Positions 19,299 to 25,200 of a stretch of 64,000 nucleotides of DNA are shown here, piece by piece. The notes under the pieces were generated by a model that had not been told where the DNA came from, did no database searches, and saw nothing but the letters and a program-made list of their open reading frames with translations. The first letter of the stretch is position 1. Each line of letters opens with the position of its first letter. The DNA is from Anaeramoeba ignava BMAN. Its lineage: Eukaryota > Protista > Anaeramoebae. The DNA lies in contig JAPDFW010000101.1 in NCBI GenBank assembly GCA_028826165.1, positions 1 through 64,000 of the forward strand. Direction: 5' to 3'. The position numbers and the translations under genes are program-made.

Positions 19299-22200
19299 AT
19301 GTCTGATTGGGTTGAGATAATAGAAACAGAAACGGAGGATGATTGGATTTCTTTACAAACTGATGCAGAACTTGAATTAGTTGAAAAAGATCATTTAGTT
19401 TCTCCACAACAACATTTTCAACCAAAACCACACGTTGAAAGACAACCTGAATTAAATTTTACAAAAAGTTTTCAAATGATGTTAAGTTTTCATGAAATGT
19501 CTCGTAAAATTTCTCAAGCAAAAAAAGATAAAAAACAAGGAAAAAAAATAAAAAAAGATGTTTTAAAGGATCTTAAAAAGGAGATTGAAATGGTATTTAT
19601 TTTCATCAAAAAATATTAAAAATTAATATTAAAATTAAAAATTAAATTCAAAATTAAAATTAAAATTAAAATTAAAATTTAAAATTAAAATTATAATTAA
19701 AATTAAAATTAAAATCAATAATTAAAATTAAAATTAAAATTAAAATTAAAATTAAAATTAAAATTAAAATTAAAATTAAAATTAAAATTAAAAATTAAAA
19801 ATTAAAATTAAAAATTAAAATTAAAATTAAAATTAAAATTAAAATTAAAATTAAAATTAAAAATTAAAATTAAAATTAAAATTTAAAATTGAAATTAAAA
19901 TTAAAAATTGAAATTAAAATAAAAATCAAAATTAAAATCAAAATTAAAATTAAATTTAAAATTTAAAATTAAAATTGAAATTAAAATTAAAATTAAAAAT
20001 CAAAATTAATATTAAAATTAAAATTAAAATTAAAATTAAAAATTAAAATTAAAATTAAAACTAAAATTAATAATTAAAATTAAAATTAAAATTAAAATTA
20101 AAATTAAAATTAAAATTAAAATTAAAATTAAAATTAAAACTAAAATTATAATTAAAATTAAAATTAAAATTAAAATTGAAATTAAAATTAAAATTGAAAT
20201 TAAAATTTAAATTGTTTTTTTTATAATAGAATCATCATCAAATTGAATTAGATGAATTATATGCATTTACAGGAACAGATCCAAATAGAGGATTAACTGA
20301 AGAACAAGCAAGAGAATCTTTAAGAGTTAATGGTCCTAATGCATTAAAACCTCCCAAACAAACACCTGAAATCATTAAATTTTTAAAACAAATGACTGGT
20401 GGATTTAGTTTATTGCTTCTTTTTGGTGGAATTTTATGTTTTATTGGTTATGGAGTTGATAAAAGCAACAAAGATTATGTAAAAGAAAAATGGAATGAAA
20501 ATAATAATAAATTAATTAATATTAATTTATTTAATTTTGAATTTTAATTAGTTTTATCTTGGAATTGTATTGGTTGCTGTTGTTCTTTTAACTGGAATAT
20601 TTAGTTATTATCAAGAACATAAAAGTGCAAAAATTATGGAAGGTTTTAAAAAACTAGTTCCTCAATTTTCTGTTGTAATTAGAGATGGAGAACAAAAAAC
20701 AATTGATGCAACACAAATTGTACCTGGAGATATTATTCTTATAAAATCTGGAGATAAAATACCTGCAGATATACGAATTATTGAAAGTGCAGATTTTCAA
20801 GTAAATATTTTGAAATTAAAATTATTTTTGAAATTAAAATTATTTTTGAAATTAAAATTATTTTTGAAATTAAAATTATTTTTGAAATTAAAAAATAAAA
20901 AAGGTTGATAACTCTTCTTTAACTGGTGAAAGTGATCCTCAATCAAGAACTCCAAAATGTACAAATGAAAATCCACTTGAAACTTCTAATCTTGCATTTT
21001 ATTCAACATTAGCAACACAAGGAAATGCTAAAGGAGTTGCAATTTTCACAGGAGATTCAACAGTTATAGGAAGAATTGCAGGATTAGCAGCAGCAACAAA
21101 AACAGAAGATACTCCAATTCGAATTGAAATTAGAAAATTTATCCGAATCATATCAATTGTTGCAATTATTCTTGGAGTTATTTTTTTCATTTTTGGAATT
21201 GTAATCAAATATGCATGGATTACAAACTTTGTTTTTGTAATTGGAATTATTGTTGCAAATGTACCTGAGGGTTTATTAGCAACAGTAACTGTGGCATTAA
21301 CTTTAACAGCAAATCGAATGTCAAAACGATCAGTTCTTGTGAAAAATCTTGAATCAGTTGAAACATTAGGATCAACATGTACAATCGCAAGTGATAAATG
21401 TCTTGGATTAAATACACCAGTAATGATGTATGATGGATCAATTAAAAATGTTCAAGAAATCAAACTTGGTGATAAACTTATGGGTGATGATAATACTCCA
21501 AGAAACATTCTTTCAACAACAAAAGGATTTGGACAAATGTATCGAATTATTCCTCAATCAGCAGATTCTTTTACAGCTAATTATTGTCATATTCTTTGTT
21601 TAAGATCTCATTTTCCAACAACAACAATTTTCGATACAAAAGAATCTTTTATTGTTCAATTTAATTTAAATCATAATATTTCTTATCAAGAATTTCCTTA
21701 TTTGATTAACAACAAAAATCAAGTTAAAGAACAAGTTGATAAATTTGTAAATTTTATTAAAAATCAAATCAAGCAGAAAAACAAGGATTTATTCGTTATG
21801 GAAGTATTGTTCATATTACTGTTGAAGATTTCTTGAAATTGAATTCTCAAATCAAAGATTCTTACAAACTTTATAAAGCAAATTTTGAGAATATTCTTAA
21901 ATCAAATCCAAAAGTTAATGTTGATCCTTATAGTTTGGGTGTTTGGATTGGAGCTAAAGAATTATCTAAAATTACAAAATTATCTCAAATTATTCCTAAA
22001 CAAATTCAATCACAACTTTCATTAAATTGGAATGCACCAGAAAATTTAATCACAACTTCAACTCAAGATTTCCTTAATAATTCAATTAATATGAATTTTG
22101 ATAATGGAATTCCTCAAGAATATCGATTAGATTCTCAAGAAAACCGAAGAAGAATTTTAACAGGAATTTTAGATTCAAAACAATTTTTATTATCAACAGA

Positions 22201-25200
22201 TTTTAATGAAAATGAACTTGATTTTGAATTTAGTTCTATTGAATTCAAAAATGATTTCAAACAATTATGCAATTCTTTAGCAGTTGATTTAGAAATTCAA
22301 TCAAAACAAAAAGAAAAAGAAAAATGTGGAAGAATTTACAAATGCCAATTAAAATCTATTGAGAATATTAATTCAATCAAGAAAACAAGTTATCAAGAAT
22401 ATTATGAACAAGATCAAACATTTTTAATTGAAGATATTGGAAATGATAATTTTTATGGATTTGAAATTGATGGAAATCGAAGATTTATTCTTGGAGATTT
22501 TACTGTTACTCACAATACAGGAACACTTACACAAAATAAGATGAGTGTTTCACATTTATGGTATGATGATGACATTTATTCTATCGATTCTACTACCGAT
22601 AATTATTATGAAAATAATAAAGGAGATACTTTTACTAATTTAATGAAGATTTCAACTCTTTGTAATCGAGAAGTATATCAACCAGATAACAAAGATAAAA
22701 GAGCAGGAAATGCAAGTGAACTTGCTTTAATTAATTTTTTTGGACCAATTTTTGATACTGAGAATGTAAACTAAATTAACAATTTATTTAAACAATTTAT
22801 TTAATTAATTTATTTCAATATTTAATTAATTTATTTTAACAATTTATTTTAACAATTTATTTAAACTATTTATTTAAACATTTTATTTAAAACAATTTAT
22901 TTCAACAATTTATTTAAACAATTTATTTAAACAATTTATTTAAACAATTTATTTAAACAATTTATTTAAATAATTTATTTAAAACAATTTATTTTAACAA
23001 TTTATTTAAACAATTTATTTTAAACAATTTATTTAAACAATTTATTTAAACAATTTATTTAAACAATTTATTTAAAACAATTTATTTAAACAATTTATTT
23101 AAACAATTTATTTAAACAATTTATTTAAAACAATTTATTTAAACAATTTATTTAAAACAAAACAATTTATTTTAAACAATTTATTTTAAACAATTTATTT
23201 TAAACAATTTATTTAAACAATTTATTTTAAACAATTTATTTAAACAATTTATTTAAAACAATTTATTTTAGAACAATTTATTTATACATTTTATTTAAAC
23301 AATTTATTTAAAATTTATTTAAAACAATTTATTTTTTATTTATACATTTTATTTAAAACAATTTAATTTATACATTTTATTTAAAACAATTTATTTAAAA
23401 ACAAATTTTATTTAAACAATTTATTTAAATTTCTGATTTTTATTTATACATTTTATTTGAATTTTATTTAAACATTTTATTTAAAACAATTTATTTAAAC
23501 AATTTACTTAAATAATTTATTTAAAAACAATTTATTTCAACAATTTATTTAAACAATTTATTTAAACAATTTATTTAAATAATTTATTTAAAAACAATTT
23601 ATTTTAAACAATTTATTTTTAAACAATTTATTTATTTAAACAATTTATTTAAACAATTTATTTAAATAATTTATTTAAAACAATTTATTTCAACAATTTA
23701 TTTAAACAATTTATTTAAACAATTTATTTAAACAATTTATTTAAACAATTTATTTAAACAATTTATTTTAACAATTTATTTAAACAATTTATTTAAAACA
23801 ATTTATTTTAACAATTTATTTAAACAATTTATTTAAACAATTTATTTTAAACAATCTATTTTAAACAATTTATTTAAACAATTTATTTAAACAATTTATT
23901 TAAACAATTAAAAGGTTAGAGAATCTCATCCACAAATTAAAGAACTTCCTTTTAATTCAACAAACAAATTTATGTTAACTATTCATCAAATTTCACCAGA
24001 TTCAGATCATACAATTATAATGATGAAAGGAGCACCTGAAAGAATAATTTCTAGATGTTCAACTATTATGATTGGAGGAAAAGAAGAAGAATTAACAGAA
24101 GAATGGAGAAGAAAATATCAACAATCAAATGAAGTAAATATTTAATTTAATTTAATTTGATTTAATTTAATTTAATTTAATTTAAATTTGATTTAATTTA
24201 ATTTAATTTAATTTGATTTAATTTAATTTAATTTGATTTAATTTAATTTAAATATTAATAGGATTTAGCAGCTAAAGGGAGAAAGAGTTTTAGGATTTTG
24301 TCAATTAAAACTTCCATATCCAAAATATACTTCTTCATTTCCATTTGATGTATCTGAATTTAACTTTCCAGTTGAAAGTGGATTATGTTTAGTAGGATTA
24401 ATTTCATTAATTGATCCACCAAGACCTACAGTTCCAGAAGCAGTTGAGAAATGTAAATCAGCAGGAATCAAAGTAATCATGGTTACAGGAGATCAACCAA
24501 CAACAGCAAAAGCAATAGCTAAACAAGTAGGAATTATTTGGTCAGAAACTGCTGATGAATATGCTACAAGAAAAGGTATTCCAAAATCACAAGTTACTCC
24601 CAAAAGAAGCTCAAGCTATTGTTATTCATGGTTCAGAACTTAAAGATATGGATGAAGAAGATTTGGATAAAATCCTTCAATTTCCTCAAATTGTTTTTGC
24701 TAGAACTTCTCCTCAACAAAAATTATTGATTGTTGAAGGTTGTCAAAGAAGAAATGAAGTTGTTGCTGTTACTGGTGATGGTGTTAATGATTCCCCTGCT
24801 TTAAAAAAAGCTGATATTGGTATTGCTATGGGAATTGCTGGTTCTGGTAAATTCTTTTAAAAAATTAAAATTAAAATTAAAATTAAAATTAAAATTAAAA
24901 TTAAAATTAAAATTAAAAATTGATTGAATAGATGTTTCAAAAGAAGCAGCTGATATGATTCTTCTTGATGATAATTTTTCATCAATCGTTAATGGAGTTG
25001 AAGAAGGAAGAATTATATTTGATAATTTAAAGAAATCAATAGCTTACACATTATCATCTAACATTCCTGAAATATCACCATTTCTTATGTTTATCATACT
25101 TGGATTACCATTACCATTATCAACAGTATTAATTCTTTGTATTGATTTAGGAACTGATTTAATTCCAGCAATTTCATTAGCATATGAAAGAGCAGAACTT

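Follow-up and report, generated by a model that had tools for sequence, protein, structure and literature searches.

The alpha-subunit gene of a P2C (Na+/K+-type) ATPase in Anaeramoeba ignava is interrupted, inside the DKTGT phosphorylation motif, by an insert that is probably a canonical class 1 intein of the Walker A family: a fixed selfish passenger that would be spliced constitutively. The window analysed here is a stretch of 64,000 nucleotides. Below, a slash in a motif marks the point of insertion. The features that the argument needs are these:

19299-25767, forward strand: P2C (Na+/K+-type) ATPase alpha-subunit gene KAJ5069892.1, with 7 exons; precursor of 1430 amino acids, 1057 without the intein
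21390-21398, forward strand: end of the N-extein, S-D-K; D is the phosphorylated aspartate (D369 of pig alpha1) and K the -1 residue
21399-22516, forward strand: predicted intein, 373 amino acids in the transcript; Cys1, block B N61-x-x-H64, block F Gly354, His372-Asn373
21757-21761, forward strand: A5 run, one base short of the transcript open reading frame (ORF); assembly frameshift, probably a sequencing error
21905-22339, forward strand: degenerate LAGLIDADG domain; motif 1 ends in WIGAK and motif 2 is GILDSKQ, where relatives have GDG and DSDG/DTDG
22517-22531, forward strand: start of the C-extein, TGTLT; Thr is the +1 nucleophile
24277-24281, forward strand: one-nucleotide surplus in a G run (G3) of a host exon, absent from the transcript ORF
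24598-24605, forward strand: one-nucleotide surplus in a C/A run (C3) of a host exon, absent from the transcript ORF

The host gene and the insert boundaries

As the original prediction held, the host has the sequence of a P2C Na+/K+-type ATPase, with putative Na+/K+ exchange. TIGR01106 (IIC) is the best profile for the exons that were scanned (three from the paralog and, from this gene, the last), Pfam also matches, and the best structure matches in the PDB are Na,K-ATPases. The motifs TGES, PEGL, DKTGT, KGAPE, GDGVND, SNIPE, DLGTD and QWAD and the C-terminal YY are all present. A PF00287 search of the genome for the beta subunit gave no match, and the control for that search likewise matched nothing anywhere. 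Two introns of the gene, 19593-20229 (637 nt) and 22766-23914 (1149 nt), are swollen by long AT-rich short tandem repeats and are much shorter in the paralog; upstream, at 10373-17146, lies an intronless gene for a 2257-amino-acid BEACH-WD40-FYVE protein.

The predicted boundaries proved exact. The host reads ...TIASDK up to 21398, with Cys directly following at 21399, and the insert ends ...VTHN at 22516, its His-Asn directly before TGTLTQN. Structure matching aligns the first residue of the C-extein with residue 371 of pig alpha1, and the insert thus follows D369-K370. As assembled, the insert measures 1118 nt (3n+2), and ORF reading meets a stop at 21834 in the frame of the Cys and finds the His-Asn end in a different frame. 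The predicted length of about 373 amino acids stands for the transcript ORF; that one nucleotide breaks the frame of the assembly had been missed.

The insert is retained in the mRNA

A transcriptome ORF in EukProt, EP01156_Anaeramoeba_ignava_P014642 (1430 amino acids, 'complete'), contains the whole 373-amino-acid insert and shares a 90% protein cluster with KAJ5069892.1. Mapped on the window it falls into seven exons separated by GT..AG introns: six spliceosomal introns are removed and the insert is kept. The insert is retained in mRNA and is not an intron, which was one of the checks that the original prediction had named. Relative to the assembly, the transcript ORF has three 1-nt indels, at 21757-21761, ~24280 and ~24605, all in homopolymer runs, and reading the insert intact takes one extra A in the first of these. 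The BMAN assembly is built from R9 nanopore reads and was polished with Racon, Nanopolish and Pilon (PMC11550330). Since the transcriptome ORF crosses the insert intact, the break of frame in the assembly most likely reflects an error of nanopore sequencing in a homopolymer. Four substitutions also separate transcript ORF and assembly, and given these the transcript may represent another allele.

The NCBI model KAJ5069892.1 spans the assembly indels by false introns or gaps. An intron restoring the frame within the insert has only two GT..AG candidates, from 21795 or 21804 to 21889; both were rejected, as they would remove residues that the transcript contains and the paralog conserves. The NCBI model uses such a gap.

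Were the three frameshifts real, this copy would be a pseudogene or one dead allele, and only the paralog on contig C55 would work. The indels themselves, the four residues that differ in the transcript and the lack of an 'intein-containing' label on KAJ5069892.1 at NCBI could be read this way, and pseudogenised inteins are described in the 2023 paper (PMC10710043). However, the transcript ORF is complete, every indel sits in a homopolymer run of an R9 nanopore assembly, there are otherwise no stop codons or signs of decay, and dN/dS is low; we regard a dead copy as very improbable.

Class 1 intein with a decayed endonuclease

From its sequence and predicted structure the insert is identified as a class 1 intein of the PI-SceI/VMA type, not a chance feature. 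The Hint-domain match that the original prediction looked to is there: PF05203 (Hom_end_hint) matches amino acids 431-801 with E=1.4e-16, above its curated cut-off, the N-terminal part of the insert also matches this profile, and the predicted structure (pLDDT 87) matches the fold of PI-SceI over its whole length with E=4e-21. Prp8 inteins match as well. The noted Cys...His-Asn architecture with a +1 Thr is borne out by a full class 1 set of C1, H64, H372, N373 and T+1, the first four of which are invariant in 112 relatives. At the block F position that is Asp in many class 1 inteins there is a Gly, which is family-wide here. With no hydrophobic segment and a position after the fourth transmembrane region, the intein is predicted to be cytosolic, in the loop after TM4. 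We infer from these features that it excises itself and ligates its exteins; splicing has been demonstrated for three other Anaeramoeba inteins (PMC10710043).

The endonuclease is another matter. An active LAGLIDADG homing intein has two motifs with catalytic Asp, and here the Asp is gone from both: motif 1 has GAK where 151 of 199 relatives have GDG, and motif 2 has DSKQ where D[ST]DG is found in 165 of 244. Because both motifs have lost this residue, the intein is predicted to be immobile.

A family that follows the lysine of Walker A

The nearest inteins follow the Lys of Walker A. The insertion comes after GK in 17 of 23 relatives from this genome and in 260 of 289 database relatives (from a search in 1.8 billion representatives), and the named database relatives are viral or metagenomic NTPases. 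The best of these relatives are only about 30-38% identical to the pump intein, and quick trees place the Anaeramoeba pair loosely. There is also similarity to a Prp8 intein (site KWK/TAEE) and to many P-loop inteins of the same genome, which holds about 100 inteins in unrelated hosts. By inference the pump intein probably belongs to network cluster 15 (Prp8/VMA/virus-linked) of PMC10710043. Elsewhere in the window, at 40067-41032, a 322-amino-acid intein of the same family sits in the Walker A motif (GAGK/SLV) of an XPB helicase; it is about 50% identical to the pump intein over the first 70 amino acids, and the two are not sisters in trees.

No other P-type host appeared among the best 150 representatives or the best 120 of two further protein searches, and those best-ranked protein matches included no A. 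flamelloides P2C intein. Scans for the junction pattern, which detect HN-TGT[L/I]T junctions only, returned 51 matches in 185,579 prokaryotic genomes, all chance or antisense and none in a P-type host, and 16 matches in viral contigs, none of them real. Searching viruses with the L107 intein yielded no related loci, phage records contained P-loop helicase inteins only, and the Jug phage papers bring up inteins and, independently of them, P-type ATPases.

Both P2C genes are occupied

A second P2C gene (contig C55, KAJ5078231.1) has an intact in-frame intein of 365 amino acids at the same SDK/TGTLT site, 57% identical to that of the window gene. NCBI names its product 'intein-containing sodium/potassium-transporting ATPase subunit alpha precursor'; because of this label, host and site are already catalogued by the depositors through the paralog, as the original prediction had suspected might be the case. 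A search of the genome for a third P2C gene found none: there are only two, both intein-occupied, and DKTGT is uninterrupted in the 16 other P-type ATPases of the genome (P2, P4 and P5 by motifs). The paralog lacks the site III Asp of TM8 (QWSC, where the window gene has QWAD) and has PEGI for PEGL, hinting that the two pumps may differ in ion stoichiometry.

Simple counting over short pieces of the two genes gives a pS of 0.36-0.48 for the intein and 0.43-0.48 for the exteins, and by the same counting dN/dS is 0.22-0.24 in the Hint parts and 0.16-0.19 where the exteins are conserved, against 0.55 for the endonuclease part. Because synonymous divergence is alike in intein and exteins, the intein is older than the P2C gene duplication. 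Given the intein's place within the motif and its presence in both P2C genes, the whole P2C activity of this organism would depend on protein splicing.

How the intein may have arrived, and whether it is a switch

In the reading that we prefer, the ancestor would have been a homing-competent intein of a family mostly at Walker A GK/T or GK/S of viral and other NTPases. It would have been copied into the look-alike K/T of DKTGT in a P2C gene of the A. ignava lineage before the duplication, the DK/T junction supplying the same Lys at -1 and, at +1, a Thr that can serve. The endonuclease would then have lost its catalytic aspartates, while purifying selection preserved the splicing domain, since a loss that is not precise would destroy the P domain. 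The 1430-amino-acid precursor would be synthesised at the ER, its intein lying in the loop that follows TM4 on the cytosolic side, and excision would proceed by an N-S shift at Cys1, transfer to Thr+1 and cyclisation of the Asn, giving a pump with a normal DKTGT.

The original prediction went further and suggested that splicing could act as a conditional (redox or salt) switch. Such an intein would be domesticated, the redox or ionic state controlling its splicing and gating maturation of the pump. The intein is kept in both P2C paralogs, Cys63 and Cys67 flank the block B His64 in both copies, the host is anaerobic and marine, and some prokaryotic inteins reportedly splice conditionally (cited in PMC10710043). 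Yet the lethal cost of imprecise loss explains retention, a close P2C orthologue in Carpediemonas membranifera has an empty DKTGT, and the genome's roughly 100 inteins sit in unrelated hosts. This one resembles any ordinary intein of a widespread family that targets P-loops, its endonuclease is decayed and related pumps of the genome are empty, and we consider a switch improbable.

The same site, and a second one, in fornicate pumps

The junction pattern search identified an intronless P2C gene on metagenome contig PPCM01002796.1, with a mini-intein of 202 amino acids at CSDK/TGTLT; its exteins are 65-70% identical to the P2C pump of C. membranifera (Carpediemonas-like), and by GC content and contig number it may belong to the C. 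frisia bin. Searching with this sequence led to a P4 flippase of Dysnectes brevis, with a 245-amino-acid intein at LSDK/TGTLT. The C. membranifera pump itself (KAG9396843), empty at DKTGT, contains a 163-amino-acid intein at KKSIAY/TLSSN, at the cytosolic start of TM5 and adjoining ion-binding residues; it is only a distant relative of the DK/T inteins. Five P-loop inteins of fornicates came out of the same search (in a DEAD helicase, an SRP-family GTPase, SNF2, SMC6 and kinesin). The D. brevis EukProt entries P005685 and P005707 and C. membranifera SMC6 account for the inteins in the P4 flippase and in the P-loops of kinesin and SMC6.

Three C. membranifera inteins, in KAG9397121 (DEAD-box helicase), KAG9391648 (SRP-family GTPase) and KAG9394151 (SNF2), are 91-97% identical in DNA, their central 400 nt almost identical, and their 30-nt flanks match at only 8-18 of 30 positions. 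Since inteins this similar stand between unlike flanks, the sequences indicate that these non-allelic copies recently underwent ectopic homing or conversion. Related inteins also occur on two intronless, eukaryote-like JGI metagenome contigs, in the catalytic loop (HRDLK/TSN) of an SH2-bearing protein kinase (L124:5001-8558) and in a DEAD helicase (L126:255-2615). In quick trees both are sister to the fornicate inteins, and the contigs possibly come from another intein-rich microbial eukaryote. A literature search, with most subscription papers outside it, found no papers linking inteins to Carpediemonas or Dysnectes, and the inteins of ion and lipid pumps in these other free-living metamonads seem unreported.

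One insertion or several

Whether the DK/TGT inteins of Anaeramoeba, the Carpediemonas-like organism and Dysnectes descend from one old insertion, spread by allelic or paralogous homing, was addressed with quick trees and an AU test from which long branches were omitted. All occupy the same site, which a single insertion would account for directly. In the free trees, however, a 98* branch sets the two fornicate DK/T inteins, together with P-loop inteins of fornicates, off from the Anaeramoeba pair, and forcing the four DK/T inteins into one clade costs 57 lnL. The AU test does not reject that clade (p=0.09), and sequence composition differs between the Anaeramoeba and fornicate intein groups; grouping by genome may reflect composition. 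Against a single insertion, too, the fornicate DK/T inteins resemble P-loop inteins of fornicates (E 1e-52) more than they do the DK/T inteins of Anaeramoeba (28% identity), and their P2C and P4 hosts split before LECA. One old insertion is in our view doubtful; separate origins are favoured, and these comparisons suggest that jumps from P-loop to DK/T probably happened more than once.

A broader proposition stands, in our judgement, at even chances. It holds that in free-living metamonads inteins have repeatedly targeted the phosphorylation motif of P-type ATPases, across pump families, and that GK/T-tuned inteins jumped independently to DK/T in Anaeramoeba (a P2C pump) and among the fornicates (the Carpediemonas-like P2C pump and the P4 flippase of Dysnectes). 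Carpediemonas and Dysnectes would also form a second group of intein-rich eukaryotes, as yet unreported, whose unrelated genes carry inteins that are 91-97% identical. If true, it would offer a system well suited to studying how micro-homology over a few codons guides ectopic homing or conversion.

Significance and comparison with known inteins

Part of this is already known: the intein is of a textbook type, the genus is known for inteins and the twin gene is named as intein-containing at NCBI. What is new is the corrected reading of the window copy, the same site in fornicate P2C and P4 pumps and the second site at TM5. A broken gene model is put right, and every P2C pump gene of A. ignava would need splicing in a polytopic membrane protein. 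Because DK/TGT is occupied in both P2C and P4 pumps and C. membranifera has the TM5 site, P-type ATPases appear as a general host class, one that the surveys PMC5784728, PMC4760082 and PMC10710043 do not discuss. The route of inteins to new sites becomes testable through the Lys/Thr micro-homology common to GK/T, DK/T and the kinase DLK/T, and the near-identical donor and recipient copies in Carpediemonas aid the testing of site-jumping.

The paralog KAJ5078231.1 and the window gene have in common the host family, the SDK/TGTLT site, a related intein and dead endonuclease motifs; they differ in that the window gene is unlabelled in NCBI and assembly indels have spoiled its model. With the Sce VMA intein (PI-SceI), its best fold match, the pump intein shares the layout of Hint, DNA-recognition insert and LAGLIDADG domains and the Cys1/NxxH/His-Asn residues. 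Identity to it is 17%, however, the host is a P-type pump rather than V-ATPase A, the +1 residue is Thr instead of Cys, and the endonuclease active-site Asp is lost. The closest sequences are the Walker A inteins of giant-virus-like helicases and AAA+ ATPases, which share the -1 Lys and a +1 Thr or Ser, whereas the pump intein targets the DK/T motif of a HAD fold and not a P-loop. The Anaeramoeba inteins of Gallot-Lavallee et al. 2023 (PMC10710043), whose main text makes no mention of P-type ATPases or fornicates, resemble it in being nuclear, in occupying a conserved motif of a novel host, in their kinship to Nucleocytoviricota-type inteins and in non-allelic spread.
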